In this document: one piece after another, positions 20,474-63,996 of the stretch | Layout: each line of letters starts with the position of its first letter | Numbering within the stretch: position 1 is the stretch's first letter | Virus record (IMG/VR): IMGVR_UViG_3300033984_000473 | Coordinates: 124,001-188,000 of that record | Strand: one strand, 5' to 3' | Length of the DNA stretch: 64,000 bases | Translations under genes and position numbers: made by a program | Notes under the pieces: generated by a model | Database searches by the model: none | Told to the model about the DNA's origin: nothing | What the model saw: the letters and a program-made list of their open reading frames with translations, nothing else

Positions 20474-20528
20474 AGTTATATATTTTTTAACAAAGGTACA
20501 TAAAAATTTTTGAATAAACAAATGTTTA

Positions 20529-26488: not shown

Positions 26489-28054
26489 TTAAATTGTTAT
26501 TTTTGCTCTTTCTCTAATTTCTTCGAATGTGTAATCAACAAGGATTTCACCATTTCTAAATACTTCAACCAATTCATCTGTTACTGAATCAAAGTCAGCA
26601 TCCATTGATGTAACGGTTCTGTATGTACCATCATCATTCTTAACTAATTTAAGCTTTCCTTGCTTAGATTTTTTGAATGATTTTGTAATGTTACCATCAG
26701 CATCCATTTCAGTTGGTGACTTAACAATATTTCTTTCTTCACCATTAACAATTGCATAACATGCTTTGGTTGCGAAGTTTTGCGTATCTCTGTTGATATC
26801 TGCTTGTAGCAATTTACCACCCATACCCAACGCTAAGTTCTCTGGAGAGATTTTCAATTCATCTAACATTGCGTAGATTTCTCTGATTGAATCCAAATTT
26901 ACACCATCACCTTGAATAACACGTACTTGTGGTGGCAATACCTTGTAACCTTTTTCATTGGTTGTGTAACCAAATTTATCGAATAAGATGTTGAAGATTT
27001 CTTTTAAAGTCATCAATACATCACCAGAATCTGGGCGTATAACCAATTGATTCCCTGGAGTTGCTGGTCTTGATAAAACCAATTCTTTCAACTCAGTTCC
27101 CCAATACTCAGAACATGCTCTGAAAATGTTAAATGAATCTGATACACACGCAACCAATCCAGTAGGATAAGTTTTCAATACACGCATCATAAGTGCTAAC
27201 TCACCTTCTTCACCGTTTAGGGTCATGATTGAGTGCTCTGTTGCTGGGATTGATAAACCATACACAGTTTCTGTGTTATAAAGGTCACGGATTAATTTTG
27301 ATGCTACTACGGTGTCTGAACCTCTAAAGTTCACCAAGTGAGCAGAACCACCAATCTTAGCTGATTGTACACTTGATACACCACGGAAACCGAAGTCATT
27401 CAATACGAAATCAACAAGGAAGTCGATAAGGCCAGCATCATACGCTGTTCCTTTTACGAATGCGGCAGTAACGATTTTTCTTACTTCTCTAGAAAGTGAA
27501 GCAACGGTAATCGGATACCAAACTTGAAGCAATATTGACTCTAAGAAGTTGGTCAACCATGCACATTCTGGGTCAAGACTTTCAATTACGAATAACACAT
27601 TTTTAGTGTTAACGATAGTTCCTTCTGGAACCGCCTTGATGCTGATAGGTAATTTCCCATCATATTTGTCAACGATGTAATCAAACTTGCTTCTATCGAA
27701 TACACCATCACGACCAAAGATACCTAATTCATTACCTAACATATCGTTAGCTTCATCAACTTCTTCTTTTGTAATAGCAATACCCTCTAAGTATTGTTTA
27801 AGTACAATCTGTAAACCATAGAATACGGTTTCTGAAAATTTACCACCTCTTGATTCCATGTATGAAACCATCTTGGTCATTTCAGAACCATAGAATTTGT
27901 GGTGTGAATATTTGTAACCATCGGAACATAAGACCAAGTTATCTGGCTTAGTGATGATTTTAGTAAGGTATTTTTGCATACCTTCAATACTAGACCAGTC
28001 TTTATTTTGAATGGCTGTCGCTAAATTCGTAGCTAATTGTGTTTGTAAACTCAT
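26489..28054 (-). CDS. nadV: nicotinamide phosphoribosyltransferase
   Basis: SDGYK.SH, DFGFRG, PATEHS, VSDS, IRPDSG, IQGDG, GMGG.LLQ, KSKQG. Confidence 0.93.
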   Translation of the reverse strand: MSLQTQLATNLATAIQNKDWSSIEGMQKYLTKIITKPDNLVLCSDGYKYSHHKFYGSEMTKMVSYMESRGGKFSETVFYGLQIVLKQYLEGIAITKEEVDEANDMLGNELGIFGRDGVFDRSKFDYIVDKYDGKLPISIKAVPEGTIVNTKNVLFVIESLDPECAWLTNFLESILLQVWYPITVASLSREVRKIVTAAFVKGTAYDAGLIDFLVDFVLNDFGFRGVSSVQSAKIGGSAHLVNFRGSDTVVASKLIRDLYNTETVYGLSIPATEHSIMTLNGEEGELALMMRVLKTYPTGLVACVSDSFNIFRACSEYWGTELKELVLSRPATPGNQLVIRPDSGDVLMTLKEIFNILFDKFGYTTNEKGYKVLPPQVRVIQGDGVNLDSIREIYAMLDELKISPENLALGMGGKLLQADINRDTQNFATKACYAIVNGEERNIVKSPTEMDADGNITKSFKKSKQGKLKLVKNDDGTYRTVTSMDADFDSVTDELVEVFRNGEILVDYTFEEIRERAKITI

Positions 28055-28130
28055 ATTGTTAAATTTTTTGTTCTTATTTGATACAAAGGTACTAAAAGTT
28101 TTTTGGATAACCAAATATTATATCGATTAT

Positions 28131-28472
28131 TTATTCATTCGTATTCACGATTAAAACTTTTTTACCTAATTTGTTTGCTTTATTGATACTATCTTTAGTA
28201 CCCTTAGATTCCATATCCCAAAAAGCTACTACTAATTCAGAAGCTTCCACTATCTGGGTATTCCTTAAAAAACCAGCAATTTTGCCATAGGCTTTCCAAT
28301 CTGGTTTAAATATAAGAGTTTCAATACCATTTTCTTTGGCATAATCCTCACCCAACGTATCAGCACCAGCGGCACCACCACTTATTATCAATGTTATACC
28401 TAATGGTTGTAGTGTTTTCTTTACTAATTCATAATCAGTAAAGCCTCGACTACCTATAATAGCTACTTTCAT
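28131..28472 (-). CDS. SLOG superfamily (DUF2493/YspA-like) protein
   Basis: IIGSR.F, ISGGA.GAD, AG..RN, AFWD..SKGT. Confidence 0.85.
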   Translation of the reverse strand: MKVAIIGSRGFTDYELVKKTLQPLGITLIISGGAAGADTLGEDYAKENGIETLIFKPDWKAYGKIAGFLRNTQIVEASELVVAFWDMESKGTKDSINKANKLGKKVLIVNTNE

Positions 28473-29968
28473 TAGTAATTACTTAATGTACCCTTGTTAT
28501 TTCTAACAATAACACTAGTAGGTTTTAATTCTTTTGGGCTAGTTAACCCCATAGCACCCAAAACTTCACGAATTTCATGAATTACAGCTGTATGATAGTT
28601 AAAAACACGTACTTTTTTCTCTTCTGGGTTCAACGCACTGATTAAATGCTTGTTTTGAGTAGCAATTCCTACTGGACATGTGTTCATATTACACTCTCTA
28701 GCTTGAATACATCCTAAACTAAGCATAAATGCACGTGCTGCGTTAACAATATCAGCACCCAACGCCAATAATTTGATAATATCGAATGAGTTGCTAGCTT
28801 TTCCAGATGCAATAAGAGTAATTTTGTCTCTCAAGTCGTATTGTTTAAGTGTTTTATTAACAAAAATCAACGCATCTACTAGTGGCATACCAACATTATT
28901 GGTAAAAACTATCGGTGCAGCACCTGTTCCACCCTCTCCACCATCAATTGTGATGAAATCTGGGTATATTTTTAGTTCTTTCATAGTATACACCAACGAT
29001 ATGAACTCACTTTCATCACCTAGACATAGTTTTATACCTATAGGTAACCCATCAGATAGGTCTCTAAGCTCACTTATGAACTCTAATAACTCTTTATGGT
29101 TAGTAAATGCACTATGGTATGGGGGACTCATTACATCTACATGTGGTTCTACCCCACGTATGTCAGCAATTTCTTGAGTATTCTTAGATGCTGGGAGAAT
29201 ACCACCATGACCAGGCTTGGCCCCTTGTGATAATTTTATCTCTACCATCTTGATACTCTTATTATTTAATATAGTATCAAAAAATCTAGGTGTTGAAAAT
29301 ACACGTCTACCATCAACTGTTCTGCCAGCACCAAAGTAACCAGTTCCAATTTGGAAACATAAATCCCCACCATTCTCTACATGATAAGGACTAACACCAC
29401 CTTCACCTGTATTGTGATAGAAGTTACCTAGCTTGGCACCACCATTCAATGCTCGAACAGCAGCATCTGACAAAGCTCCGTAACTCATTGCACTAATGTT
29501 AAAGATACTAGCCGAATAAGGATGGCGACAGTTTTCACCACCAATCGTTACACGAGGCTCAGCAATCAATGAAATGTCTTTAGGGAACATAGAATGACCT
29601 AAGAACTCGTAACCTTCCTTATACACGTCTAATTGCGTTCCGAAGGGTGTTGTGTTGATTTCACCTTTGGCTTTTTGATAGACATCAGAACGTTTCTCAC
29701 GATTGTATGGTGTTCCGTTGGTATCGTGCTCAATAAAGTATTGTTGTATCTTTGAACGTTCCGACTCAAAAACCCATCTAAGTCTTGCAACTAATGGGTA
29801 GTTTTTAAGTAGAGCATGTTTTGTTTGGAATATGTCGTGAATCACAACAATTAACGCAACTAAAAACAAGGTTGCTAATATCCATAAACCTAAGCTTTGA
29901 ACTATGTAAGAAATTACACCCAAGGCTATTGTCCAATAAACAAAAAAGATTACGATTTTATCTCTCAT
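28472..29968 (-). CDS. FMN-binding glutamate synthase family protein
   Basis: SAMSYGALS, NTGEGG, EIKLSQGAKPGHGG, DGGEGGTGAAP, CIQA..C....CP.G. Confidence 0.9.
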   Translation of the reverse strand: MRDKIVIFFVYWTIALGVISYIVQSLGLWILATLFLVALIVVIHDIFQTKHALLKNYPLVARLRWVFESERSKIQQYFIEHDTNGTPYNREKRSDVYQKAKGEINTTPFGTQLDVYKEGYEFLGHSMFPKDISLIAEPRVTIGGENCRHPYSASIFNISAMSYGALSDAAVRALNGGAKLGNFYHNTGEGGVSPYHVENGGDLCFQIGTGYFGAGRTVDGRRVFSTPRFFDTILNNKSIKMVEIKLSQGAKPGHGGILPASKNTQEIADIRGVEPHVDVMSPPYHSAFTNHKELLEFISELRDLSDGLPIGIKLCLGDESEFISLVYTMKELKIYPDFITIDGGEGGTGAAPIVFTNNVGMPLVDALIFVNKTLKQYDLRDKITLIASGKASNSFDIIKLLALGADIVNAARAFMLSLGCIQARECNMNTCPVGIATQNKHLISALNPEEKKVRVFNYHTAVIHEIREVLGAMGLTSPKELKPTSVIVRNNKGTLSNY

Positions 29969-30951
29969 TAGTATTTGATTAATTTATCAGTCACCACTTT
30001 TTTCAAGAATGTTTTCATCAACTCAACGTGTTCTGGAACAATCTTATCTTCAACCTTAAAGCCATAGTCAACCTTTGGAATGTGCCCATCACCTTGACTT
30101 GGTTCTGTTATTACATTTAAGAAATCTTTTAAGTCGAACCAACGAACTTCAGCGATATCGTCAGAAGCTTCTGGACGACCCATTTGGTCCCATTCGTATG
30201 TCATAAACAATGTTGTCATGATACCAGATTCCTCTTTGGCGTATCTCCAATCTTCAACAGCTTGACTGCAAATATAAGTCATACCCAATGCTGATAACTT
30301 GGTTTCTTCCATCAACTCTCTACGAGCAGCCATTTCCCAGTTTACATCGTCACGGTCAACAAAACCACCAACAAATCTAAAAAGAGTTTCTGCTGGTTTT
30401 CTAGCCAAAAGGATTTGTCCTTCTCTAGCTACAACAACATCAACGGTTGCATAGGTTACTGGTCTTTGTTTTGAGATACCATAGATTATACCAGCTCTAA
30501 AATCTTCACTTTCTTCAACAGTTTGTGCTGCTAAACCTCTGATTTCAGTAGCGTTGTGAGATTCGATTGGTGTAAATTCTTCTACATGGTGTCTACCATG
30601 ATAGTGAGGGATAAAAGAATCACGACTACCGTAAATGATAGCTTGTTTCTCTGGAAATATAGTTCTGATAGTGTTATCAAGGTTTGTTGACCATTTTTCG
30701 TCACTTCTATTATCTTCTAAAGGTAGAACTATAACATTAGGATACGTATTTTGTATCATTTTCTTTCTGGTAGGAAAATCCAAAGGATTTCTTTTTGTAT
30801 TCTGGATTCTAGCGATACCTAGAAATACAATAACATTTGAGTGTTTGTTGGTTACATGGTTAAGTAACCCTTTATGACCATCATGTAGATAAGGCGTTTC
30901 AAATCTACCAATAATAATCCCAATTGCTTCCGCTTCGTTTAATTTTTTCAT
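29968..30951 (-). CDS. bifunctional NMN adenylyltransferase / ADP-ribose Nudix hydrolase (NadM-Nudix)
   Basis: GRF...LHDGH, NPL, ATEIR; Nudix box GGFVD......AARREL.EET; SDD. Confidence 0.9.
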   Translation of the reverse strand: MKKLNEAEAIGIIIGRFETPYLHDGHKGLLNHVTNKHSNVIVFLGIARIQNTKRNPLDFPTRKKMIQNTYPNVIVLPLEDNRSDEKWSTNLDNTIRTIFPEKQAIIYGSRDSFIPHYHGRHHVEEFTPIESHNATEIRGLAAQTVEESEDFRAGIIYGISKQRPVTYATVDVVVAREGQILLARKPAETLFRFVGGFVDRDDVNWEMAARRELMEETKLSALGMTYICSQAVEDWRYAKEESGIMTTLFMTYEWDQMGRPEASDDIAEVRWFDLKDFLNVITEPSQGDGHIPKVDYGFKVEDKIVPEHVELMKTFLKKVVTDKLIKY

Positions 30952-30978
30952 GTTTCTAATTTTATAATACAAAGGTAC

Positions 30979-40240: not shown

Positions 40241-40294
40241 AATTTTATTTTTTCTACAAATATACGAATTAATTCGACTGATTGCAAGTTTTTG

Positions 40295-40389
40295 AGCAGA
40301 AAAGAGGAATCGAACCTCTGAATCTTCACGTAGTCATACGATTTTTTCTCCCTTGGAATTGGGTGTTTTACCAACTAAACTATTTCTGC
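40295..40389 (-). ncRNA. atypical tRNA-Gly(TCC)-like RNA with imperfect anticodon stem and ~25-nt extra arm
   Basis: acceptor GCAGAAA/TTTCTGC, D-loop AGTTGGTA, T-arm AGAGG-TTCGATT-CCTCT; insert contains a CGTA..TACG hairpin. Confidence 0.6.
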
Positions 40390-40392: not shown

Positions 40393-41307
40393 TAACAAAG
40401 TGAGCGTAGCCACGTTCCTGTTTTATTTCATCATTTATCTTTTATAGAGTATTTTTGTTTTTGTTTTTAATAATATTGGTTCTAATTGCTGCTTCTCTCA
40501 TTTTTTCTCTAGCTTCTTCAGATAATACTCTTTTACCACCAACTAGTTTGCTTTTAACTAAATTTGATAGTTTAATTTTTTGTTCTTTACCATCTTCAGA
40601 ATCCCAATAATTTGTGATTTGTTTAGACATAAATTCTTTATATTCATCACCTCTTTCGAATAAACCACCATTAGGTATAAATCGACCATCTGAAATTGCT
40701 TTTTTTATCGAAGAACTTAAATTTTGCTTGTGTTCTTCAGTCCACAAATAATTAATAACACCTTCACCACCATCAGTTAAATTTAATAATGGTCCAGTTT
40801 TAATATCACGTCTTCCAATTTTCTTAATCATCAGTTTTTCAAATTCTAACGCTTCTAATTCATTTTCAGTTGTTAATATTTTTTCATAAAATATTTCAGA
40901 ATCTTTATTAATCATCTGTCTAATTTTAGATAAAACTGGTGATTTTAATTTGGTTCTTTTAGCTCGTCTGTAATGTTCATACATTCGTAATTTAGAACCC
41001 TTTCCAACATAAAATGGTGTTTCACCATCTTTTAAAACATAAACATAATACTCCATAATTTTCTACTTTATCTTAACTTATACCCGTTAGATATAAATAT
41101 CTTGATATTTTGAAAAAGCCACTACCCGTCTATCATCGCAATCCAAGTTCCCTTGCTAAGACTGTATGTGTTGCACCCCGTGTTGCGGTAGTAATAACGA
41201 TACTTCGTTGACAGTCCCACTTTTAGGCCTTCGTAGGTATCTCCTACCTCTTGGAGAGATGTCGTGAACTTCCTCTGTTGCCAGCGATGAATCCTCTTTC
41301 TTTGTTA
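40393..41307 (-). ncRNA. rnpB: RNase P RNA (divergent), interrupted by a GIY-YIG ORF; segments 41119-41307 and 40393-40441
   Basis: P1 TAACAAAG/CTTTGTTA, P2 TTCATCG/TGATGAA, P3 CTG-GCAA-CAG, P4 GAGGAAGTTCACG / ACAGGAACGTGGCT with bulged U, AGCAAG, GGGTAG and AGATAAATG conserved elements. Confidence 0.8.
40442..41056 (-). mobile_element. GIY-YIG homing endonuclease inside the RNase P RNA gene
   Basis: YYVY...FYVGKG...R, E..A..FE, GPLLNLTDGGEG, NUMOD-like tail; own ATATTTAT promoter. Confidence 0.85.
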
Positions 41308-41780: not shown

Positions 41781-41802
41781 CGTTCTAGTAATCAAGTACT
41801 TG

Positions 41803-41877
41803 TGCATCCACTGGGGCTCGAACCCAGACAGCCCATATTAAAAGTATGGTGCCTTATTCCATTTTGGCTATAGATGC
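41803..41877 (-). tRNA. tRNA-Lys(TTT)
   Basis: CCATA-CTTTTAA-TATGG anticodon arm; cloverleaf. Confidence 0.85.
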
Positions 41878-41890
41878 TTTGTTAATCTAG

Positions 41891-41962
41891 TAGCCCCAAC
41901 GGGAATCGAACCCATTTCCCCCCGTTAAAAGCGGGGTGCATCGCCATCAATGCTTTGAAGCC
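41891..41962 (-). tRNA. tRNA-Lys(TTT)
   Basis: CCCCG-CTTTTAA-CGGGG. Confidence 0.85.
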
Positions 41963-41999
41963 ATAGTTGTAACTATCCCTTCAACGCATTGAAAGGCAG

Positions 42000-42035
42000 T
42001 TACTGTTTACTCTTTATGTTCTTTATTGTTTTCAT
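42000..42035 (-). CDS. putative Lys-rich leader peptide MKTIKNIKSKQ
   Basis: 11 codons, 4 Lys; stop overlaps a long hairpin (41969-42003) just upstream of the two tRNA-Lys genes. Confidence 0.45.
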   Translation of the reverse strand: MKTIKNIKSKQ

Positions 42036-42066
42036 ATCTTTATTTTAAATCAATTTTTTTTATTTG

Positions 42067-42142
42067 GCCTCCCAGAAGGATTCGAACCTTCCATCCATAA
42101 GCCCCCACTGGGCTCCGCTTTTCCTACTAAGCTATGGGACGC
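42067..42142 (-). tRNA. tRNA-His(GTG)-like, atypical (A33, G:G acceptor mismatch, encoded G-1 opposite C73)
   Basis: GAGCC-CAGTGGG-GGCTT; canonical T-arm. Confidence 0.55.
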
Positions 42143-42150
42143 ATATTTTG

Positions 42151-42222
42151 AGCGGGAGATGGGGTTCGAACCCACGACCCTCTGGTTGGTAACCAAATGC
42201 TCTACCACTGAGCTACTCCCGC
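42151..42222 (-). tRNA. tRNA-Gly(ACC)
   Basis: GCGGGAG acceptor, TTTGG-TTACCAA-CCAGA, U73. Confidence 0.85.
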
Positions 42223-42297
42223 AATTTTACCCAGAATCGTTTAACTGGGTGATAGTTAGCATGACTATCTTCGCTACATGCAACGATTTTTACTTTG

Positions 42298-42370
42298 AGC
42301 AGAAGACGGGGCTCGAACCCGCAACATCCAGCTTGGAAGGCTAGCACTCTACCAATTGAGCTACTTCTGC
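42298..42370 (-). tRNA. tRNA-Gly(TCC)
   Basis: CTAGC-CTTCCAA-GCTGG, U73. Confidence 0.92.
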
Positions 42371-42486
42371 ATTAATAACGTCAGTAGGACTTAAAGGGAA
42401 CCACTCATCTTTATCCCTTCATCAATGGGTCATTATCCCATATTTGGCGTAATCCATACATTGCTGCACGTCTATCCTACTTTTTG

Positions 42487-42559
42487 AGCCTCAAGTCGGA
42501 TTCGAACCAACGACATCTTGTTTACAAAACAAGTGCTCTACCAACTGAGCTATTGAGGC
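42487..42559 (-). tRNA. tRNA-Thr(TGT)
   Basis: CTTGT-TTTGTAA-ACAAG. Confidence 0.92.
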
Positions 42560-42571
42560 ATTTTAAATTAG

Positions 42572-42645
42572 AGCTCTGTGACGGTATCGAACCGACTCTA
42601 TTCTGGGTTACAAATCCAGTGCACCACCTCTTGTGCGTACAGAGC
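42572..42645 (-). tRNA. tRNA-Thr(TGT), divergent
   Basis: CTGGA-TTTGTAA-CCCAG; T-loop TTCGATA. Confidence 0.75.
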
Positions 42646-42713
42646 ATTGTAATTTTTATTGTCCACTTGAAAAGCCAAGTTCTGGTCAAAAATTTAAAAT
42701 CTACCCTAACGAG

Positions 42714-42795
42714 TGGGGCCGATAGGATTCGAACCTACTCAGCTTACGCAACGGTGTTACAGACCGCCCCAACTCTCCAACTTTGGCGAGACCCC
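42714..42795 (-). tRNA. tRNA-Tyr(GTA)
   Basis: GCGGT-CTGTAAC-ACCGT, long variable arm. Confidence 0.88.
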
Positions 42796-42852
42796 ATTTT
42801 TGATTTTTTGTCTAGCATTTTCCAGAAATCAATAAAACTACATACTCGCCAG

Positions 42853-42933
42853 TGGGCCTAGAGGGACTCGAACCCCCACGTCTTTCAAACTTGGGCTACA
42901 ACCAAGCGAGCCAGCCAATTGCTCAATAGACCC
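42853..42933 (-). tRNA. tRNA-Tyr(GTA), divergent
   Basis: CTTGG-TTGTAGC-CCAAG, long variable arm. Confidence 0.8.
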
Positions 42934-42941
42934 ATTAAGAA

Positions 42942-43001
42942 CAGAGTGATATTTTGGTTCAAATTAAAAGTTTGTTTTTGTTTACTTGCTGAAATCACTC
43001 T
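42942..43001 (-). ncRNA. anticodon-displaying stem RNA, member A (Lys UUU loop)
   Basis: AGAGTGAT/ATCACTCT stem, TTCAGCAA motif, CAAA-CTTTTAA-TTTG hairpin. Confidence 0.6.
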
Positions 43002-43010
43002 TTATCTCTG

Positions 43011-43082
43011 TTGTCCTACTAGGATTCGAACCTAGACGGACTGGCTCAAAACCAGTAATGCTAACCGTTACATTATAGGACA
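43011..43082 (-). tRNA. tRNA-Gln(TTG)
   Basis: U1-A72, ACTGG-TTTTGAG-CCAGT. Confidence 0.9.
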
Positions 43083-43088
43083 ATAATT

Positions 43089-43144
43089 CTAATTCTACGC
43101 AGACACTTACATCGTATGGGCCCCTATGAATCAGTAACAGTCTC
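43089..43144 (-). repeat. repeated structured spacer motif, copy 1 (copy 2 at 56601-56648)
   Basis: GAGACTGTTA-CTRATTC-ATAG...GCGTA-GAATTAG. Confidence 0.7.
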
Positions 43145-43150
43145 TTCTCG

Positions 43151-43238
43151 TCTAGATAACGGGACTCGAACCCGCATAATGCTTTTAAACAATTCTCGAT
43201 TCCAAATCGAGTCGGCTTCCAATTGCCTTCATATCTAG
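43151..43238 (-). tRNA. tRNA-Pro(TGG) with unusually long variable arm
   Basis: CTCGA-TTTGGAA-TCGAG; ~19-nt variable region. Confidence 0.75.
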
Positions 43239-43249
43239 TTAATTATCAG

Positions 43250-43322
43250 TCTAAATGGCAAGATTCGAACTTGCGGTCTCTACGGTCCAAGTGTAGCGGA
43301 TTTCCAACTTTCCCACATCTAG
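43250..43322 (-). tRNA. tRNA-Pro(TGG)
   Basis: CTACA-CTTGGAC-CGTAG, C1-G72, A73. Confidence 0.82.
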
Positions 43323-43337
43323 TTAATTTTTGAACAT

Positions 43338-43371
43338 AAAAAAACCCAGTCTAGATTTCTCTAACTGGGTT
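43338..43371 (-). terminator. attenuator terminator of tRNA operon 1
   Basis: AACCCAGTTAGA...TCTAGACTGGGTT followed by T-run, 16 nt before the first tRNA. Confidence 0.85.
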
Positions 43372-43397
43372 GTATAAATTAATACTTGCGTACTTTT

Positions 43398-43502
43398 CTA
43401 TCCTACAATCACATCCTTCAACATGACATACCCAGTCGTCCCGTTAGGCGTTCCGCCTTTAGGTTGATACTGTTTCGTTTGATATGTTGCTGTTGTTTTC
43501 AT
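43398..43502 (-). CDS. leader peptide 1: MKTTATYQTKQYQPKGGTPNGTTGYVMLKDVIVG
   Basis: 34 aa, translated by hand; 22 of residues 2-25 are K/T/Y/Q/P/G; contains antiterminator ACTGGGT (43430-43436). Confidence 0.75.
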   Translation of the reverse strand: MKTTATYQTKQYQPKGGTPNGTTGYVMLKDVIVG

Positions 43503-43530
43503 AATTTTTTGTTTGTTGAGTTTTACCTCG

Positions 43531-43600
43531 TTGTTTATAAATATACTCTTATTCTTAAAAGTTACACAAAGGTACTACATTTATTTTGATTTGTCAAGTT
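43531..43600 (-). promoter_or_regulatory. tRNA-operon dual promoter cassette, copy 1
   Basis: TTGAC..TACCTTTG-TGTA-ACTTTTAAGAATAAGAGT-ATATTTATAAACAA; near-identical at 58083-58152 and 60266-60334. Confidence 0.8.
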
Positions 43601-43602
43601 TT

Positions 43603-44037
43603 TTATGACTTTTTTTTAATTTTTTTTTGTTTTTTAATCTCATCCCTTATGTTTGCTGCTATTTCGTAGTCTTCATTCTCTACAGCTTCAGCTAATTTTT
43701 CATCTAATGTTTTTTCTAAGACAGGTTTTTCTGGTTTTATCGTTGTATATGGAATGTCAACCATCACCACTTTTACCAATTCACCACCAAAAGCATACCA
43801 TACTCTTTTCTCAAAATGGAAACCATCTTCTTCAAATGTCTCTATCTTGTCTGGCTCACCTAATTGCTCATCAATACTATCGATGTGTTCGATGTTATCA
43901 AGCATGTTGATAAGTCCTTTGATTTGTTCTTCTTTTTCAGCATCGAATTCTTTATTCTTAGCATCTTTTCTTAAAATCTTTTTTTTATTGTTCTTCCCTA
44001 AGAAGTCATTAAAAAGGTCGTCAAATTTATCTGTCAT
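43603..44037 (-). CDS. protein with C-terminal UvrB/UvrC (UVR) motif
   Basis: L..AVE.EDYE.AA.IRDEI. Confidence 0.75.
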   Translation of the reverse strand: MTDKFDDLFNDFLGKNNKKKILRKDAKNKEFDAEKEEQIKGLINMLDNIEHIDSIDEQLGEPDKIETFEEDGFHFEKRVWYAFGGELVKVVMVDIPYTTIKPEKPVLEKTLDEKLAEAVENEDYEIAANIRDEIKKQKKIKKKS

Positions 44038-44826: not shown

Positions 44827-45147
44827 TTACTTTAAATACTTTCTAAATGCAAAGATACTCCTGGATTTAAGATAAGTCAAGTTATTTTCGTTGGCATAAG
44901 CCTCTTTTTCAAAAGAAATATTCACATATCCAACTCGATACAACGCTATCAAATACCACACATAAAATGGTAAGATTCCCAGCTCCAATTGCTGCATTAA
45001 ATGAATCTTTTCGTGATTTATTAGCTCTGGATATATATCACTTGCATCACCTATAAATATGAAGGGAAAGAAAGCTAACCCTCTTATCCCCTCACTATTC
45101 AATACCCATTCAAAGAATCGAATGGCTCTTCTACTTACTACTATCAT
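44827..45147 (-). CDS. HExxH zinc-peptidase-like membrane protein
   Basis: FPFIF, INHEKIH..QQ.E, ISFEKEAY. Confidence 0.75.
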   Translation of the reverse strand: MIVVSRRAIRFFEWVLNSEGIRGLAFFPFIFIGDASDIYPELINHEKIHLMQQLELGILPFYVWYLIALYRVGYVNISFEKEAYANENNLTYLKSRSIFAFRKYLK

Positions 45148-45968
45148 TATGATTTAAGTAGCAATTCTTTCATGTCTTTTACCAACTCTCTATGTCCACT
45201 ACCATATGGTTCCCACGCCAACCCCATTGCTTTAAGGTCGTAGTGTTTAACTATCGTTGAATACGATGTTTCACCTTCTGGAAACCCAACAATATAAATA
45301 CTATCAGCCAATTCAGCAGCAAGTCTTAAATCGTGTGTCGAAAAAATAATCGTATTGTATTCATTGCTTTTACCAATTCTAACAAATGATTCTTTCACTT
45401 TTTCGATGTTACCAACATCCAACCCAGAGAACGGTTCATCCAAAATCATAAAGTGTTTAGATGAAAGCATTTGCTCAATGATTGCAGTTCTTTGTCTTTG
45501 ACCACCAGATAATTCACAAGAATATTTGTCTTTGTGTTCCAACAATCCCCAATCAGTTAGATACTCTTTAATCTGAGCCTCTTTTTCAGCCTTTGTAAGC
45601 GTTGATTTTCTCAAAGCATACTCACAAATCTGTGTGATGGTTTTGTGTCTAAAAAGGGTGTATTTTTGGTCTACAAACCCTATGTCGCCCTCTGACAAGT
45701 TCTTTGCATCGTCAGCAACATCGGTAGTTAAGTCACTAATAAGCATTTGACCACTTAATGGCTTCAATAAACCAGTTAGTGTTTTGAATAAGGTAGATTT
45801 ACCTCTACCAGAACGACCAATAAAAGCAATTACTTGCCCAGTTGATTCATGTCCTTGTCTTATGATGTCTTTTTCTTCAAAAGAAACATCTTTAAGGATT
45901 GTTTTTCCATCGTAACCAGCACTTAGGTCTTTAACGTATAATAACGTTTGTTCAGCTTTATAACTCAT
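45147..45968 (-). CDS. ABC transporter ATP-binding subunit (NitT/TauT-like)
   Basis: GRSGRGKST, LSGGQRQR, ILDEPFSGLD, THD. Confidence 0.92.
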   Translation of the reverse strand: MSYKAEQTLLYVKDLSAGYDGKTILKDVSFEEKDIIRQGHESTGQVIAFIGRSGRGKSTLFKTLTGLLKPLSGQMLISDLTTDVADDAKNLSEGDIGFVDQKYTLFRHKTITQICEYALRKSTLTKAEKEAQIKEYLTDWGLLEHKDKYSCELSGGQRQRTAIIEQMLSSKHFMILDEPFSGLDVGNIEKVKESFVRIGKSNEYNTIIFSTHDLRLAAELADSIYIVGFPEGETSYSTIVKHYDLKAMGLAWEPYGSGHRELVKDMKELLLKS

Positions 45969-45971
45969 AGT

Positions 45972-46742
45972 TTAGTAATTTGAATATCTAAAGATTAATT
46001 TTCTTAATTTTGTGATAATGAAGTCTAAGGTTAAACCTACAACTACGATTATGATTTGCAATGCGATTACTTTACCAGCATCACCTAACTTATCATTGTT
46101 CTTGATAAGGAATCCAAGTCCACCAGCGGCCACAAGGATAGATTCAACGGTTACAAGCATCATCCATACGATTGCCAAGTTTTGTCTAACCAACTCAAAT
46201 ACGTAGTCAATACGACCTTTGATTACAACTTCCCATAAACATTCCCATCTGCTGCAACCTAATGTCCTAGCGTGGTCGAATTCTTCTTCTGGAATATCTT
46301 TAATCATTTGCATAAGACTTGTGGTTAAGAATGTTGTCATAAAAACAACAAGAACCCAGACTTGAAGTGTTCTAGCATCATTGATAAGAATTGCAATGTA
46401 AAATGCGATACCAGTCAAAGGTAGATATCTAAGCTTAGATATGAATGTACCAACTGGTTTAAAGAAAGGAATTGCAGATGAATAAGCAAACATAAGTGAA
46501 ATCACGATGGAAATCATTACAGCTTGACTACATAACCAAATTGAACTTGCAATGTGAACGACCAACCCATCGGCCCAAAGGTCTTTTAACCCATGCAATA
46601 CTTGTAGTGGTGTTGGGAAAAGGTGAGTATCACCAAAACTGTTAAGTCCCCAAAACGTTAATAGAATTACTAACCATGATGTCAGTATTGTCGTTTTACT
46701 AGAACCTTTAAGATTCTCAAACGGTTTAAATAATCTTTTCAT
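45972..46742 (-). CDS. ABC transporter permease (NitT/TauT-like)
   Basis: FPTP, multiple TMs, EAA-like FDHARTLGCSRW, GGLG. Confidence 0.88.
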   Translation of the reverse strand: MKRLFKPFENLKGSSKTTILTSWLVILLTFWGLNSFGDTHLFPTPLQVLHGLKDLWADGLVVHIASSIWLCSQAVMISIVISLMFAYSSAIPFFKPVGTFISKLRYLPLTGIAFYIAILINDARTLQVWVLVVFMTTFLTTSLMQMIKDIPEEEFDHARTLGCSRWECLWEVVIKGRIDYVFELVRQNLAIVWMMLVTVESILVAAGGLGFLIKNNDKLGDAGKVIALQIIIVVVGLTLDFIITKLRKLIFRYSNY

Positions 46743-47190: not shown

Positions 47191-49005
47191 TTAGTTTAAC
47201 AAAGTGATTTCCACTCGTCTGTTTTTAGCTTTACCACTAGCAGTGTTGTTATTAGCTACTGGGTTAGTATCACCTTTACCATCAACCAATTGGAAACGGT
47301 CTTTAGAAATACCTCTACCAGTTAAGTAATTTACTACTGAATTAGCACGACCTTTAGATAATGATAAGTTAGAATCAGAGTTACCAACGTTATCTGTGTG
47401 ACCAACAATTCTCAATTTGGTTTGTTCAGCTTGTACTAGTAAGTTGTAGATTGCTTCTAAATCTTTTTCAGAACCAGCGATTTCTGAACTACCTGTTGCA
47501 AAGCTAATGTTCCATTGACCATCAGCCAATACTTTAGTTTTAGTGTCAGTATAAGTTATTTTATCAGCTTTACCAGAAGCAACATCAGTTACCGATTTCA
47601 AGAAGTATAAATTAACCGCATCTTCGTAAGGTACAACACCATCTTTACATGTTTCATTAAAACCACATGGGTTCAAGTCAGTCAAGTAAACCGATACTTG
47701 GTTATAAACCGCTTTGTATCTGTTGTTACCATCTGTGATTCCGTAGTATTGCATTGCATCAGCATAGTTAAACACTTTTGAACCACCGATATTGTAATCT
47801 AAACCATCTTTGGTACCTTTTTGACCTTTGAATAAATCATACCAGTATTTAGGTGTTTCAAAGTCATATGTTTTAGCAACACATTCAGATGCTTTAACAG
47901 CCCACTCATCATATTGTTTGATTTGATTAGAAGCAGTATATGTTTGTTTCAATATATTAACAACTTCTTTCTCATGTTGCAATGCCCATTCTTTAATAAC
48001 AACTAGTGTTGTTGCCATTTGGTTAACAAATTCTTTAGTTGAAACTACATCGGTGAAACCACTCAAAGCATCGAAAGCCATTTTATCACCAGGAGTCCAT
48101 GTAGTTGCCCCATCAATTTTGTGGTTAACTGTTTTACCAGTTAATTTACCATTCTCAACCACTTTTAAAGGAACAGTATAACCTGTTTTTTGTGACTTGA
48201 TAAGTTCTTTCACAGAGTTGATGTAGTCATCGTCTTGTGATGGTACGAAGTTAATCGCATTAGCATCATAAGTACTTGGGTCTGGATTCACTGGAATCTT
48301 ATTAGCAAAAGCATAGTTGATTGCAACAACCCAGTCACCATCACCGATTACAGAAGATATTACAGCACCTTTCATTGATTGTGGATTATCTTTCCAGATT
48401 TTTGGTCCGATTAATTTATCTTCACCATATGAAAGACCGTAAGCACCAATTACTTGTACGTGGTATTTACCTTTACCAAATTTTTCATCCAAAGCTTTTT
48501 GTGTAGTCGTAATATAGAACGGCACACCGTCACCCATAATACTTACACCAAACGCTGATTTATCTGATACTGGATATTGAGCACCCTTAGAGAATTCCTC
48601 AACGAATTTTAATTGCATATCACGTAACCCACCGACCATGTCTTGTCTTACGATTTCTAAGTTAACACCAGAAGCTTCCATAAGAGAACCTTGAGTTGTA
48701 CGTGGACCACCGTTAGCCACAATCATACCAGCGTTACCATTCCATGCATATTCTGCAATACGGATAAGACCTTTGTTTGCTACAGCTGTTGATGGCTGAT
48801 TAGACGGAGTTGGTAGCTTGGCACCACTCGTTACGTTGTTCAATTCATCAGTATTGATACTTAATGAAGTTAATTGCTTTGAAACAGCAACTCGTAATCC
48901 AGGTGATACGAAATAAACGATTCCTAATACGATTGCTAGACCTAATGCTAAGATTGTCCCCTCAGCTAAGGTAGTTAATTTTGGTTGTTTGAAGATTGCT
49001 CCCAT
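47191..49005 (-). CDS. membrane-anchored ABC substrate-binding-like protein with C-terminal OmpA domain
   Basis: N-terminal TM; ISFATGS, GHTD..G....N..LS..RA, N.T..G.AKNRRVEI. Confidence 0.85.
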   Translation of the reverse strand: MGAIFKQPKLTTLAEGTILALGLAIVLGIVYFVSPGLRVAVSKQLTSLSINTDELNNVTSGAKLPTPSNQPSTAVANKGLIRIAEYAWNGNAGMIVANGGPRTTQGSLMEASGVNLEIVRQDMVGGLRDMQLKFVEEFSKGAQYPVSDKSAFGVSIMGDGVPFYITTTQKALDEKFGKGKYHVQVIGAYGLSYGEDKLIGPKIWKDNPQSMKGAVISSVIGDGDWVVAINYAFANKIPVNPDPSTYDANAINFVPSQDDDYINSVKELIKSQKTGYTVPLKVVENGKLTGKTVNHKIDGATTWTPGDKMAFDALSGFTDVVSTKEFVNQMATTLVVIKEWALQHEKEVVNILKQTYTASNQIKQYDEWAVKASECVAKTYDFETPKYWYDLFKGQKGTKDGLDYNIGGSKVFNYADAMQYYGITDGNNRYKAVYNQVSVYLTDLNPCGFNETCKDGVVPYEDAVNLYFLKSVTDVASGKADKITYTDTKTKVLADGQWNISFATGSSEIAGSEKDLEAIYNLLVQAEQTKLRIVGHTDNVGNSDSNLSLSKGRANSVVNYLTGRGISKDRFQLVDGKGDTNPVANNNTASGKAKNRRVEITLLN

Positions 49006-51993: not shown

Positions 51994-52110
51994 TACAAAG
52001 AGTAGGATTCGAACCTACGTAACTCCCTACGTCATGCTTCCAAACTGAAAAGGAATCGAACCTTACACACGAATTCAAGGGGGAGTGCTTTACCACTAAG
52101 CTATCTCCGT
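51994..52110 (-). ncRNA. tRNA-like RNA with ~50-nt insert in the anticodon loop containing a second T-arm
   Basis: acceptor ACGGAGA/TCTTTGT, D-arm, CTCCC/GGGAG stem, inner AAGG-TTCGATT-CCTT, outer GTAGG-TTCGAAT-CCTAC. Confidence 0.65.
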
Positions 52111-54376: not shown

Positions 54377-54452
54377 TGGTGGTACCGAGTGGATTCGAAC
54401 CACTGACACCCGCATCTTCAGTGCGGTGCTCTACCAACTGAGCTACGGTACC
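54377..54452 (-). tRNA. tRNA-Phe(GAA) with encoded CCA
   Basis: CCGCA-CTGAAGA-TGCGG. Confidence 0.93.
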
Positions 54453-54596
54453 TTTTTATCTCGTAGTTTTTAAGGCTCAAGTGATTACATTGCTGCTCAC
54501 TCTAAGTAACCGTGATATAGTACAAACCTATGATATTTCTATACTACAAAGATACTAATCTTTTTTTAAAGTTGCAACCTTTGTATCGTTTTTTTT

Positions 54597-56087: not shown

Positions 56088-56238
56088 TTCATTGAAATTA
56101 TCGGAATACTTGGTTAGCTTTTTTTGATGTCTGCTACCAGTTTCCTTTTTACGTAACTCTATACGTTCTTGTCTTGTTAACGGGCTCCCAAGCGGTCACC
56201 CCCATTTTGTGTGTTTTTCATAACATTTATATTTGTTG

Positions 56239-56311
56239 TTGAGGAAGAGGGACTTGAACCCTACTCTACCACCCGTCTAGGTGGTCTTCTAACCAGTTAA
56301 AGTATTCCCCA
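56239..56311 (-). tRNA. atypical tRNA with 6-nt anticodon loop (TAGACG; Val-like or undetermined)
   Basis: acceptor TGGGGAA/TTCCTCA, D- and T-arms present, CCACC/GGTGG stem. Confidence 0.5.
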
Positions 56312-56400: not shown

Positions 56401-56519
56401 CAGCGGCACCAGGAATCGAACCTAGAACAATGGCGTGACAGGCTATATTGAATGCTGAACGTAATCTTCTTAATCAGATTAACTTTTTTAACATTGTTAT
56501 ACCATTTAACTATACCGCT
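56401..56519 (-). ncRNA. tRNA-Asp-like RNA with the Y-like module inserted in the anticodon arm, member C
   Basis: AGCGGTA/TGCCGCT acceptor, G73, D and T arms; insert AAAAAAGTTAATCT-loop-AGATTACGTTCAGCA-...-GC-CTGTCAC-GC. Confidence 0.7.
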
Positions 56520-56659: not shown

Positions 56660-57298
56660 TTATTCTCTACCTTGAAACCATCCTTGTAATAGGTAATTTT
56701 CAAGTTCTTCTTTTTTAATCTTTTTGTTAATACTATCTTTGGTTATCCAACATGTACCATATTGGCTATTTGTCTTACCAGTTCCAGTACCCTTTTTCTT
56801 TTCAGACATCAATTTTTTAGTTTCTTCTGAATGATTTCTATCATTCCAATCGAACCTTTTTATTTTACCAGTTAACAACATATTTGTCATATGTGTTGAA
56901 GCTTTATCTCTATGTATTTTAGCAAATTCTTCATCATTTTTTAATTTGTCAGCAAAAGCTTTTCCAGCACAAACTGAACGATGTTTTTGTTGTTCATCGC
57001 TGATAAAACCACCACTTCCACCACCCATTAAATTCATACAGTTTTTATCTGTTATCATTTCTGGTGTGATAGTTTTTATCTCAGCTTCAACCAACAATTC
57101 TCTTGTTTCAAAGAACTCTAAAATTTCTTTATTGAAATTCTCAATCCCATACTTACGCATTGAAGCTCTTAATCTTCTACCGCTACCTAAGTAACCATCA
57201 TTTATGTCATTCGTACTATGCATCCCTACATAATATCTTCCTGTTACATTACATGTTGTTTTATACAAATAATGTATTGTTTTTTCTTTTCTTGTCAT
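56660..57298 (-). mobile_element. GIY-YIG homing endonuclease (Seg-like, NUMOD3) inside tRNA operon 2
   Basis: YLYKTT...G.YYVGMH, YLGSG, YG..NF.KEIL, HSEETK..MS; own ATATTTAT promoter. Confidence 0.87.
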
Positions 57299-57350
57299 TG
57301 TCGTATATCTTTTATTATAAATATACGACAAAGTACAAAAAAGTCAAGGG

Positions 57351-57904: not shown

Positions 57905-57934
57905 AAAAAAAGTCTGACTTATTAGGTCAGACTT
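57905..57934 (-). terminator. attenuator terminator of tRNA operon 2
   Basis: AAGTCTGAC-CTAATAA-GTCAGACTT plus T-run, 16 nt before tRNA-Phe. Confidence 0.85.
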
Positions 57935-57959
57935 ATCATTTTGTTAGATTAACTACTCG

Positions 57960-58049
57960 TTAACTTATGACAGTGTTTGACCTTCCGAAAGAGTAATCCT
58001 CTTCGGCTGCGAAAAATGCGATATCAAATATGTTAGTTAATGTTCTCAT
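57960..58049 (-). CDS. leader peptide 2: MRTLTNIFDIAFFAAEEDYSFGRSNTVIS
   Basis: 29 aa; 11 of residues 8-21 are F/D/E/A; antiterminator AGGTCAAAC (57975-57983). Confidence 0.75.
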   Translation of the reverse strand: MRTLTNIFDIAFFAAEEDYSFGRSNTVIS

Positions 58050-58082
58050 AGTTTTTTATTTTTGTGGGTTTCCCCTTTTTGT

Positions 58083-58152
58083 TTGTTTATAAATATACTC
58101 TTATTCTTAAAAGTTATACAAAGGTACTACTTTTTTTAATACAAGTCAAGTT
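58083..58152 (-). promoter_or_regulatory. tRNA-operon dual promoter cassette, copy 2
   Basis: near-identical to 43531-43600. Confidence 0.8.
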
Positions 58153-60115: not shown

Positions 60116-60145
60116 AAAAAACCCACCTAATTTCTTAGATGGGTT
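60116..60145 (-). terminator. attenuator terminator of tRNA operon 3
   Basis: AACCCATCTAA-GAAA-TTAGGTGGGTT plus T-run, just before tRNA-Cys. Confidence 0.85.
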
Positions 60146-60172
60146 CCATTGTTATAGTATTTAATTACTTAC

Positions 60173-60250
60173 TTAACAAGCATAACCCATCCTGTCTGCT
60201 ACTAGCAAACATAAGACTAAAAGGACTACTACGTTGTTAAAATTTTTCAT
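60173..60250 (-). CDS. leader peptide 3: MKNFNNVVVLLVLCLLVADRMGYAC
   Basis: 25 aa; residues 7-17 are all V/L/C; antiterminator GGATGGGTT (60184-60192). Confidence 0.75.
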   Translation of the reverse strand: MKNFNNVVVLLVLCLLVADRMGYAC

Positions 60251-60265
60251 TGTTATATTTTTTGT

Positions 60266-60334
60266 TTGTTTATAAATATACTCTTATCTCTAAAAGTTAT
60301 ACAAAGGTACGAAACATTTTTGTAATAGTCAAGC
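60266..60334 (-). promoter_or_regulatory. tRNA-operon dual promoter cassette, copy 3
   Basis: near-identical to the other copies; hairpin loop AGAA changes to GAGA. Confidence 0.8.
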
Positions 60335-61993: not shown

Positions 61994-63205
61994 TTAAATG
62001 TTAGTTGCCGAGATTGGCAAGTTATAGAAATCTCTTCTTATTGTTACTAAAAGTGCATCTACTAATCCTGGGTTTACCTTGTTTGGTAAATCAGATTTAT
62101 CAAATACCTCGTCCATATTTGCTATGGCTTCATCGGCCATGACAATCAACCCATCTAAATCAACTTCACCACGTCTAATCTTAAGAAGTTCTTCAGCATC
62201 TGGTCGTCTAACGATGATACCTTTACCTTCTCCGATTTCTGTAGCCATATTGATAAGTCGCATACAATGCATCATGTTCTTACCATCAATCTTTTGACCA
62301 TGACCTTGAACTTCAACGTATCTGGTTACATTTCTTTTATCTAACCATTCTTGGTATTCTTTAAAGTCTTTACAGTGCTCTGAATAACCATCTTTGTTAT
62401 AAACGATTGTACTGATTGTTTTTTCACCTTTAGGAATACTAGAAAGACGTAGTTGATTTGAGATACCATAGTTAATGACCCCATCTTCATCTTCATGACC
62501 AGTGTTTACAAGTCCTTTATATCCAAGACCCATTGGCTTACCAGCATCTTTTAGAACAGCCTTTCTTTGGTTGCGTTCTACTTCTGAAAATTTATCAGAG
62601 TGACACATTTCACCAACACTGTCATAAAATAAAGCATACGTATCCCTAGCGTTAGGTATGTTTACAGCACCTATGAATTTTTCATCGTACTTCCCAGAGT
62701 TCCATATTTTCCATGGAATTGATTTCTCACCTTCAAGTACATAACAGAAATCCAATAGGTCTTTACGAACTACTTTGTCCTGTTCCCAGTTTTGTTTCTT
62801 GTTAAGTCCTTTGGCTTTTTTGATTTGCTGTCTAGCGTAACCACCGAAAGAATCTTTACACGCTTTGGTGATGAAATCTTCCTTGTGAGCAATGATAATG
62901 TCAAACAAAGGGTTCTTTGTGACGATACAATCTTCTGGACTGTTAAGGAGCTCAAGAACAGTTGGGTTGTTTGTACTCATAAGTTCTAAGAACCTTTTAA
63001 GTTCCCAACCCGTCCAATCTTTATTGATATTCAACTGTTCAACATATCCAGTACCCAAGATATTATCAATAGGCAAGATGTAAACGAATTTTTTATCCAC
63101 ATCAGACGTTGGTGTCTGCGTACCATAGGCTTGACTACCAATAATGCATTCAAAAAGAATCAATCCATTCTCTTTAAGGTAATCGTATGTAATTTTCTGT
63201 GTCAT
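61994..63205 (-). CDS. nucleotidyltransferase (YcgL/DNA pol beta-like family)
   Basis: GSQAYGT.TP.SDVD, NP..LE.L, K.MMH..RL. Confidence 0.85.
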   Translation of the reverse strand: MTQKITYDYLKENGLILFECIIGSQAYGTQTPTSDVDKKFVYILPIDNILGTGYVEQLNINKDWTGWELKRFLELMSTNNPTVLELLNSPEDCIVTKNPLFDIIIAHKEDFITKACKDSFGGYARQQIKKAKGLNKKQNWEQDKVVRKDLLDFCYVLEGEKSIPWKIWNSGKYDEKFIGAVNIPNARDTYALFYDSVGEMCHSDKFSEVERNQRKAVLKDAGKPMGLGYKGLVNTGHEDEDGVINYGISNQLRLSSIPKGEKTISTIVYNKDGYSEHCKDFKEYQEWLDKRNVTRYVEVQGHGQKIDGKNMMHCMRLINMATEIGEGKGIIVRRPDAEELLKIRRGEVDLDGLIVMADEAIANMDEVFDKSDLPNKVNPGLVDALLVTIRRDFYNLPISATNI

Positions 63206-63288
63206 ATTCTTAATTTTTAACAAAGGTATGTATAATTTATTAAACTACCAAACATTTTTACATTTTAATTCCAGTAAGATAGATAAAT

Positions 63289-63996
63289 TTACTTAAATTT
63301 ACGTTCTACTTCCATCCTCTTTAAACATTCGAAAGGTGTTTCGTTGGGGTTAAGTGTATAATTACATCCAATAACACCACCCTTCCAACTACCAGTTCTT
63401 TCACCAACTTCTTCATTAAAGTTTATCTCAATAACATGTCTAGTTTTAATTTGTAAACCAAACCATCTCTTCCAATATCTTTTAACTTGATGAATCGTTG
63501 CTTTTATATTTTGAATGTCGCCAGAATTTAATTGATAAGCATAATCATGCACTTCATATAATATTTTATCGGACCATTTATCTGAATCCCAAAAATCATC
63601 ACCTTTTTCTTCTTTTTTCCAACCATCTTTAAGTAAGTATTCAGTTTTTAAATGGTTATACGCCCATGGAAAATCAAATGATAGTTTATGGAAACCTCTA
63701 ACCCAAAATTGGTTTGGAAATCCACTGTCAATATGGTAAAACATAAGACCATATGTTTTTGATTCAGAAGTATTACCTCTACCAGTATCATACGGTAAAT
63801 GAATATATAAATTACCCCAAGAATAAAAACATAATATCAACGATATCGGTATTAACCATAAACTAATGAATGGTAACACTAATAAAAGTAACGTTGTTAA
63901 ATTAGTGTTAATTTGTGGTCTAGGGTCGAAATAACCATTATTTTCATATGTTAAATAGAAACCATTACCTTTACTACTTTTAGGATAAAAAGACAC
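63289..63996 (-). CDS. hypothetical membrane protein (5' end probably beyond the window edge)
   Basis: TM segment; C-terminal F..EVGERTGSWKGG..GC. Confidence 0.65.
   Translation of the reverse strand: MSFYPKSSKGNGFYLTYENNGYFDPRPQINTNLTTLLLLVLPFISLWLIPISLILCFYSWGNLYIHLPYDTGRGNTSESKTYGLMFYHIDSGFPNQFWVRGFHKLSFDFPWAYNHLKTEYLLKDGWKKEEKGDDFWDSDKWSDKILYEVHDYAYQLNSGDIQNIKATIHQVKRYWKRWFGLQIKTRHVIEINFNEEVGERTGSWKGGVIGCNYTLNPNETPFECLKRMEVERKFK

Follow-up and report, generated by a model that had tools for sequence, protein, structure and literature searches.

Module 1, which precedes a 12-tRNA operon on the minus strand of the genome of a large uncultured phage, very probably encodes a ribosome-mediated leader-peptide transcription attenuator that gates this operon, and it appears to be one of four paralogous modules that would together gate the phage's tRNA set. 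The reading is founded on the architecture of the module, on a match in composition between the leader and the tRNAs encoded behind it, on two mutually exclusive and covarying RNA pairings (termed 2:3 and 3:4 below), and on the lack of any other promoter in front of the tRNA genes; translation of the leader and termination at the hairpin are what these features predict. An attenuator had been proposed at this site in the preliminary description, and the sequence-level predictions of that proposal are supported, with the feature proving larger, a system of four parts. By the window we mean the whole stretch of 64,000 nucleotides that was analysed. It lies on a 233-kb IMG/VR contig, has a GC content of 34%, uses the standard genetic code, carries phage-typical auxiliary genes, and has nearly all of its genes on the minus strand.

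The putative promoter of module 1 (43567-43597, minus strand) consists of TTG(ACA), a 20-nt spacer, and TACCTTTG, a TTGACA-N20-TACCTTTG layout that we take to be the -33/-7 promoter of the Bacteroidota type. The window contains 29 copies of TACCTTTG where 3 would be expected, nearly all of them on the coding strand and upstream of genes, and sites of the form TTG-N20-TAnnTTTG number 33 on the minus strand versus 9 on the plus strand. A sigma-70 consensus scan is uninformative here, given that the promoters are of the Bacteroidota type. The promoter 19-mer occurs mainly in genomes of Flavobacteriaceae, which points to a Flavobacteriia-like bacterium, probably a member of that class, as the host of the phage. 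The three modules in the window have in common a 45-nt block (43531-43575, minus strand) that covers the -7 box and part of the 5′ UTR; it is matched 3 times at ≤2 mismatches, against 0 expected, and has no other copy in the window. Further downstream, an A-rich stretch precedes the ATG of the leader ORF, as it does in 43 of the 43 distinct modules assembled from this phage and its relatives. Between the 45-nt block and the A-rich start region, a small hairpin can be drawn in two of the window modules (43510-43530 and 58065-58080) and in many relatives, examples being GAGG-UAAA-ACUC and GGGG-AAA-CCC; its sequence varies among modules with the pairing kept, and it is absent from module 3.

A scan for TTG-N20-TAnnTTTG found no second promoter-like site between 43567 and 41711, and none between the leader promoter and the end of the array in any of the three window modules. 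As the sole such site of each array precedes the leader, the tRNAs of this phage would be made only by polymerases that pass the hairpin. In the relatives L006 (369-760), L015, and L008, the family B modules possess a second TTG-N20-TACCTTTG promoter between the terminator and the first tRNA, so read-through is not the sole route of expression in every relative.

The leader ORF of module 1 (43502-43398, minus strand) starts with ATG and comprises 34 codons followed by TAG, exactly as first translated. The earlier count of 22 residues from Lys, Thr, Tyr, Gln, Pro, and Gly among the 24 at positions 2-25 is also correct, and, relative to the amino-acid composition of long ORFs in the same window, the enrichment corresponds to a binomial P of 3e-9 for this segment and of 1e-6 for the whole peptide. 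We define the sensor segment as those codons that lie far enough upstream for a stalled ribosome to leave region 2, the 5′ strand of the antiterminator, free; in module 1 it consists of codons 2-17, and 15 of these 16 codons specify amino acids that the tRNAs downstream serve. Cognate codons extend further, into region 2 itself (codons 19-25), where a stall would favor termination over read-through. Because ~30 nt separate region 2 from the stop codon downstream of it, a ribosome that terminates there would not cover region 2. From this distance it had been concluded that control would have to be purely kinetic; the gap stands, but the need for purely kinetic control is eased by a predicted anti-antiterminator helix between regions 1 and 2. 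Recoding of the stop codon was also considered and is not supported, as the ORF coverage of the window fits the standard code and the leaders of relatives end in TAA, not TAG.

The regulated array (41802-43322, minus strand) begins 15 nt past the U-run of the terminator and encodes, in order, Pro, Pro, Gln, Tyr, Tyr, Thr, Thr, Gly(UCC), Gly(ACC), His, Lys, and Lys tRNAs. The number of 12 given at the outset holds: ARAGORN finds 11, and Rfam adds one at 42572-42645, which ARAGORN at relaxed settings calls as a second Thr(UGU). The leader had been described as matched to the amino acids served downstream, and for six of them it is; the array serves seven, the exception being tRNA-His(GUG) at 42066-42141, for which leader A has no codon. 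Across the three window modules, the U-run ends 8-25 nt upstream of the first tRNA.

From the sensor codons to the first tRNA, the transcript of module 1 harbors four segments with alternative pairing partners. Region 1 (ACATATC ... CAGT; 43469-43487, minus strand) lies within the sensor codons and is predicted to pair with region 2 (GACTGGGTATGT; 43426-43437, minus strand), which spans codons 22-26 and would supply the 5′ strand of the antiterminator. An inner hairpin (AGGC GGAAC GCCT; 43446-43458, minus strand) is situated between the sensor codons and region 2, and an AT-rich spacer hairpin (43381-43394, minus strand) between the stop codon and region 3. Region 3 (ACAACCCAGTTAGA; 43360-43373, minus strand) is the 5′ arm of the terminator and can pair either with region 2 or with region 4 (43338-43355, minus strand), the terminator 3′ arm, after which comes a run of seven U. 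A simple consensus terminator scan does not return the hairpin of module 1, whose loop or bulge lies beyond the limits of that scan.

The core pairing on which the attenuator was originally proposed, ACTGGGT at 43430-43436 with ACCCAGT at 43364-43370, together with its TGT/ACA extension, is present position by position. With the extension included, the 2:3 duplex is predicted at -14.1 kcal/mol versus -14.2 kcal/mol for the terminator hairpin. The segment 43335-43445, folded alone, adopts the antiterminator as its minimum-energy structure, and a longer transcript folds so as to form the terminator, with another helix within the ORF. That the antiterminator excludes the terminator, as had been claimed, follows from their sharing of region 3, and the 2:3 pairing moreover covaries with the terminator arm. 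The predicted 1:2 helix joins 43469-43487 with 43426-43437, encloses a small conserved hairpin, and is the minimum-energy fold of the ORF-only segment (z = -4.4); in nearly all modules, folding predicts that region 2, as long as region 3 is not yet transcribed, pairs with the sensor codons behind it. At 91% paired and invariant, the ACATAY/GTATGT 1:2 helix carries no covariation information for or against. Added to 2:3 and 3:4, the 1:2 helix gives the classical four-region attenuator layout, in which region 1 may act as an anti-antiterminator. The inner hairpin, which shows one compensatory pair in the RNAalifold consensus and has a counterpart in all four families, could possibly act as a transcription pause signal. 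At the position of the spacer hairpin, the aligned relatives keep a hairpin of different sequence.

The same order of elements (promoter, small ORF, GC hairpin with U-run, and tRNA array) recurs in all three modules of the window, and a fourth module lies on the same 233-kb contig outside it; that this architecture is repeated three times beyond module 1, each leader fitting its own tRNA set, speaks for the attenuator reading. Module 2 (family B; 57905-58149, minus strand) comprises a promoter at 58119-58149, an ORF at 57960-58049, region 2 at 57975-57983, and a terminator at 57905-57934, followed by Phe, Glu, Asp, Glu, Asp, and then Ala tRNAs. Module 3 (family C; 60116-60332, minus strand) has its promoter at 60302-60332, ORF at 60173-60250, region 2 at 60184-60193, and terminator at 60116-60146, and it leads into Cys, Val, Leu, Leu, Val, and Leu tRNAs. 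The leader of the fourth module (family D; locus L018, or L068:6768-6869) starts with MRTINIHMISISNWRRNSH and precedes tRNAs for Ser, His, Trp, Ile, Met, Asn, and Arg. The D module of this phage additionally contains a very basic 36-codon ORF (L068:6637-6747) between the conserved UTR and the leader, as well as two ORFs, one of 59 aa and one HNH-like, that separate the terminator from the first tRNA.

Relatives were gathered with the promoter 19-mer from nine IMG/VR contigs and many metagenome contigs. Most of the metagenome matches proved to be unrelated host-type promoters (e.g., one upstream of a pyrF-like gene) and were removed, which left 43 distinct modules in four leader families; an exact 22-mer of the UTR matches the source contig only. 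At least 11 further family D modules (about a dozen) have other promoters and stand outside the 43; they came from a 15-mer motif scan, mostly noise, whose output was then passed through a peptide filter. The leader ORFs of the 43 modules are 24-34 codons long and intact in every case. Family A has a core like KTTTTYQTQYQPKGGKPQG and an array for Pro, Gln, Tyr, Thr, Gly, and Lys; family B, a core like IFDFAFFAAEADE and an array for Phe, Glu, Asp, and Ala; family C, a core like VVVLLVLCLLV and an array for Cys, Val, and Leu; and family D, a core like RTINIHMISISNWRRNSH and an array for Ser, His, Trp, Ile, Met, Asn, and Arg. The amino-acid sets of the four families do not overlap and sum to all 20.

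How well does each leader fit its array? In the sensor segment, the pooled cognate fraction is 0.97 for family A (background 0.31), 0.93 for family D (0.29), 0.62 for family B (0.25), and 0.58 for family C (0.16), the values for B and C being depressed solely by six N-terminal residues that the two families share and that look like the beginning of family D. Read in either alternative frame, the same nucleotides yield cognate fractions of 0.09-0.35 and many stops, versus none in the ORF frame. For the leaders of the phage in the window, taken whole, the binomial P is 1e-6 for A, 1e-4 for C, 7e-5 for D, and a marginal 0.06 for B. Seen from the side of the arrays, 92-97% of the tRNAs have their amino acid represented in their own leader. 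Conservation of the ORF in relatives had been named as a check on the proposal, and 11 distinct family A relatives do retain the ORF, in frame and with a composition rich in cognate residues. Substitutions among relatives remain inside the cognate set: Thr and Lys replace each other, Ala5 gives way to Thr or Lys, and in L004, Asn20 has become Gln through two base changes. The C-terminal tails of the leaders diverge freely, and conservation peaks where RNA pairing or cognate codons are required.

The correspondence extends from amino acids to anticodons. Leu codons TTR and CTN accompany Leu tRNAs with UAA/CAA and UAG/AAG anticodons, Arg codons AGA and CGY accompany UCU and ACG, Ser codons AGY and TCR accompany GCU and UGA, and Gly codons GGC and GGR accompany ACC/GCC and UCC; where an array has the matching isoacceptors, its leader draws on the two codon boxes of Leu, Arg, and Ser alike and on the two classes of Gly. 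The use of several synonymous codons per amino acid had been noted before and taken as the mark of a broad sensor. The codons are present, but their match to the anticodons calls for an amended interpretation, suggesting that the attenuator resolves individual tRNA isoacceptors.

Covariation ties each leader to its own terminator. In the family A alignment, the seven ACTGGGT/ACCCAGT pairs are formed in 97% of cells, three of them with compensatory changes, and the terminator itself is conserved across relatives with compensatory pairs. In families A, C, and D, a segment around codons 18-24 is complementary to the 5′ arm of the terminator, with z values of -2 to -5.6 relative to shuffled ORFs. 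Pairing of an ORF with its own terminator averages -13.2 kcal/mol versus -8.9 kcal/mol for cross-family pairs, and when terminators were permuted among modules, 0 of 20,000 trials reached the observed pairing (p ≤ 5e-5 across as well as within families). Individual swaps are evident: region 2 and the terminator read GGTCAAGG/CCTTGACC in L007 and L271 versus GTCGGGT/ACCCGAC in other D members, and ATCGGGT/ACCCGAT in L058, and family C contains GTGGGC/GCCCAT versus ATGGGTT/AACCCAT. Fixed-column pair counts understate the pairing in family D, where the helix register shifts between sequences. The antiterminator of family B is weak, at 5-6 bp, and no better than in shuffled ORFs.

Taken as an attenuator, module 1 would operate as follows. 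Transcription would start from the promoter at 43597-43567, and a ribosome would load on the A-rich leader and translate the 34-codon ORF. When decoding is fast, the ribosome would traverse region 2, which would then be covered or recaptured by region 1, leaving regions 3 and 4 to form the terminator, and RNA polymerase would halt 15 nt short of the first tRNA. If a Lys, Thr, Tyr, Gln, Pro, or Gly codon within codons 2-18 is decoded slowly, the charged cognate tRNA being scarce, the ribosome would stall on region 1; region 2, left free, would pair with region 3, no terminator would form, and the polymerase would enter the 12 tRNA genes. The newly made tRNAs would restore decoding speed and shut the operon off. 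This polarity would hold with or without a role for the 1:2 helix. With an output consisting of the very tRNAs that read the sensor codons, the circuit would amount to negative feedback on decoding capacity.

What would such a circuit sense in nature? The tRNA clusters of large phages are thought to replace host tRNAs that have been lost to shut-off or to anticodon nucleases, and a corresponding trigger for the present system, host tRNA loss through host shut-off or an anticodon-nuclease defense rather than amino-acid starvation, is suggested by the isoacceptor-level choice of codons, by the uselessness of extra tRNA in starvation, and by the nearby RNA-repair and counter-defense genes. Extended to the whole set, the proposal is that of a closed-loop controller of tRNA supply, whose four leaders cover 20 amino acids, sample isoacceptors, and each induce the needed replacement operon upon destruction of host tRNA, and to this we would give about an even chance. 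The live alternative concerns the signal, not the device: the same attenuator hardware might respond to a host that is starved for amino acids or under general translation stress, with an output tuned to host physiology. We consider this doubtful, albeit worth keeping in view. The classical attenuators (trp, his, thr, and ilv) respond to levels of charged tRNA, which drop on starvation, and the analyses of composition, pairing, and codons do not separate low from uncharged tRNA. However, additional tRNA is no cure for starvation, and its induction would bring no benefit; the leaders track the anticodons of their arrays down to the Leu, Arg, and Ser boxes and the Gly classes, a refinement that an amino-acid sensor would not need; and the genome encodes a Thg1-like protein, RlaP, and an Acb3-like protein, which belong to RNA repair and counter-defense.

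Explanations that dispense with the device altogether are unlikely. It could be argued that nothing is regulated here, that the leaders are ordinary or spurious short genes, the terminators leaky, the read-through constitutive, and the match in composition a product of coincidence or shared ancestry. Short ORFs and hairpins with U-runs are indeed common in AT-rich DNA, the consensus scan showed no excess of terminator-like sites, and modules within a family share descent and hence are not independent; yet four independent leader families each fit their own array, and in one frame only, with substitutions confined to the cognate set, region 2 covarying with the terminator arm even within families, C-terminal tails diverging as those of a functional peptide would not, and arrays devoid of another promoter, all of which makes the absence of regulation very improbable. 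Just as improbable is a switch that works without ribosomes, in which the leader RNA binds tRNA in the manner of a T-box, or a phage protein, with the ORF as a bystander. Alternative structures of regions 1-4 do not require a ribosome, and the strongly conserved 5′ UTR could mark the binding site of a factor, but Rfam, even at E ≤ 10, offers no match to a T-box or another family, all 43 modules have an intact ORF with a frame-specific composition, and every leader carries codons for 3-7 amino acids, unlike a single specifier. More improbable still is that the peptides themselves are the product, for instance a small hydrophobic membrane peptide in family C, and that the hairpin merely ends the gene: the core VVVLLVLCLLV does resemble a transmembrane segment, yet families A and D, with the same promoter, UTR, and layout, encode hydrophilic peptides of low complexity, and conservation is highest at the RNA pairings and cognate codons and lowest in the tails.

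As a ribosome-mediated attenuator, the system is best compared with the multivalent attenuators of cellular operons. Short codon-rich leaders that serve several amino acids at once are known from thr (Thr and Ile) and ilvGMEDA (Leu, Val, and Ile), and related leaders precede trp, his, leu, and pheA, all of them textbook examples. Attenuators of the thr/ilv type likewise have a terminator and a mutually exclusive antiterminator near the end of the ORF, the 1:2 helix being a predicted one here, and they regulate biosynthetic enzymes, whereas the genes controlled here would be those of tRNAs. The phage system further differs from the thr/ilv type in that four leaders split 20 amino acids at 3-7 each, in that the codons track isoacceptors, and in its viral setting with promoters of the Bacteroidota type. 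The usual targets of the class are genes for biosynthesis, transport, or aminoacyl-tRNA synthetases, and the genes downstream here are tRNAs. Nearest in logic is E. coli pheST with its pheM leader, in which leader-peptide feedback likewise acts on the translation apparatus and not on biosynthesis; there, however, the regulated gene product is a cellular aminoacyl-tRNA synthetase for one amino acid, and here it would be viral tRNAs. T-box riboswitches likewise read the state of a specific tRNA and toggle between terminator and antiterminator ahead of translation-related genes, but they bind uncharged tRNA through a specifier codon and the T-box sequence, with neither ribosome nor ORF, in contrast to the ORF conserved in frame here.

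Database searches returned no known counterpart. None of the Rfam leader families (Thr_leader, His_leader, Leu_leader, Trp_leader, Phe_leader, etc.) matches, and over the whole window only tRNAs attain the gathering score; at E ≤ 10, the interval 43300-43640 gives four sub-threshold chance matches to sRNA or lncRNA families and no T-box of the RF00230 type. The promoter-plus-UTR pattern has no match among the genomes of 185,579 species, represented by one genome each, and leaders A and D have neither nucleotide nor peptide matches among GenBank phages. In the full-text literature searched, which omits some journals, we found no prior description of a leader-peptide attenuator on tRNA genes; a paper naming a tRNA operon alongside pheL turned out to be unrelated to such attenuators. 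Likewise, for the tRNA arrays of T4, T5, vibriophages, and mycobacteriophages, no description of codon-sensing attenuators was found in the literature searched.

Leader-peptide attenuation of tRNA genes is a departure from attenuators as usually drawn. Genes for tRNAs are generally thought to be controlled at their promoters, by growth rate and the stringent response, and not by their own codons, and little is known about when, and in what amounts, phages express their tRNA arrays. An attenuator on a tRNA operon would constitute direct feedback from decoding speed to tRNA synthesis, and, if the proposal is true, the system would be without precedent in two respects, as a sensor of tRNA depletion in a virus and as a control of tRNA genes through translation of the codons that their products read. 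With 20 amino acids split over four sensors, ~130 codons would suffice for a virus to survey the entire decoding capacity of its host. The link between phage tRNA arrays and host defenses that target tRNA is thereby made testable, attenuation would be extended to viruses infecting Bacteroidota, and the modules would offer compact parts whose output depends on how much of a particular tRNA is available. Coupling of transcription and translation has been little studied in Flavobacteriia-like hosts.

The tRNA complement of the phage has several further peculiarities. A lone tRNA-Phe (54377-54452) has its own promoter (54547-54577) and no leader ORF, so at least some tRNA of this phage escapes control by an attenuator. 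The Gly tRNA with anticodon ACC (42150-42222) is unusual, and a tRNA at 56238-56311 is called with a four-base anticodon, 'agac', a call also obtained for relatives L006 and L088. Three tRNA-like genes (51994-52110, 56401-56519, and 40294-40389) are over-long, at 96-119 nt, and may carry inserts or introns. An amber-suppressor-like tRNA with a CUA anticodon (L068:58-131) is found near the D module of a near-identical contig, and a tRNA with a UCA anticodon in the family A array of L022. ORFs resembling GIY-YIG endonucleases (40442-41056 and 56660-57331) have been inserted in the tRNA arrays or next to them; their resemblance is to homing endonucleases, and they probably play a part in array turnover. 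The tRNA arrays of T4, T5, vibriophages, and mycobacteriophages are likewise interspersed with homing-endonuclease-like ORFs.

Elsewhere in the window, genes for an RNase R-like protein (5852-7771), a Thg1-like protein (17901-18671; tRNA 5′-end repair or guanylyltransferase), the RNA-repair nucleotidyltransferase RlaP (61994-63223), and an Acb3-like inhibitor of CBASS (63289-63996) make up a context of RNA maintenance and counter-defense that fits a role in tRNA supply. Genes for NAD salvage are present as well, comprising PRPP synthetase (19481-20575), nicotinamide phosphoribosyltransferase (26489-28114), and a cytidylyltransferase/NUDIX protein (29968-30972), along with a Sir2-family protein (21702-22454) and a glutamate-synthase-domain protein (28472-29968). 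Just upstream of module 1 lie an ABC transporter ATPase and permease pair (45147-46742) and a 604-aa OmpA-domain protein (47191-49005), the ATPase region being the only part with nucleotide similarity (68%) to the 462-kb uncultured phage LR756500.1.
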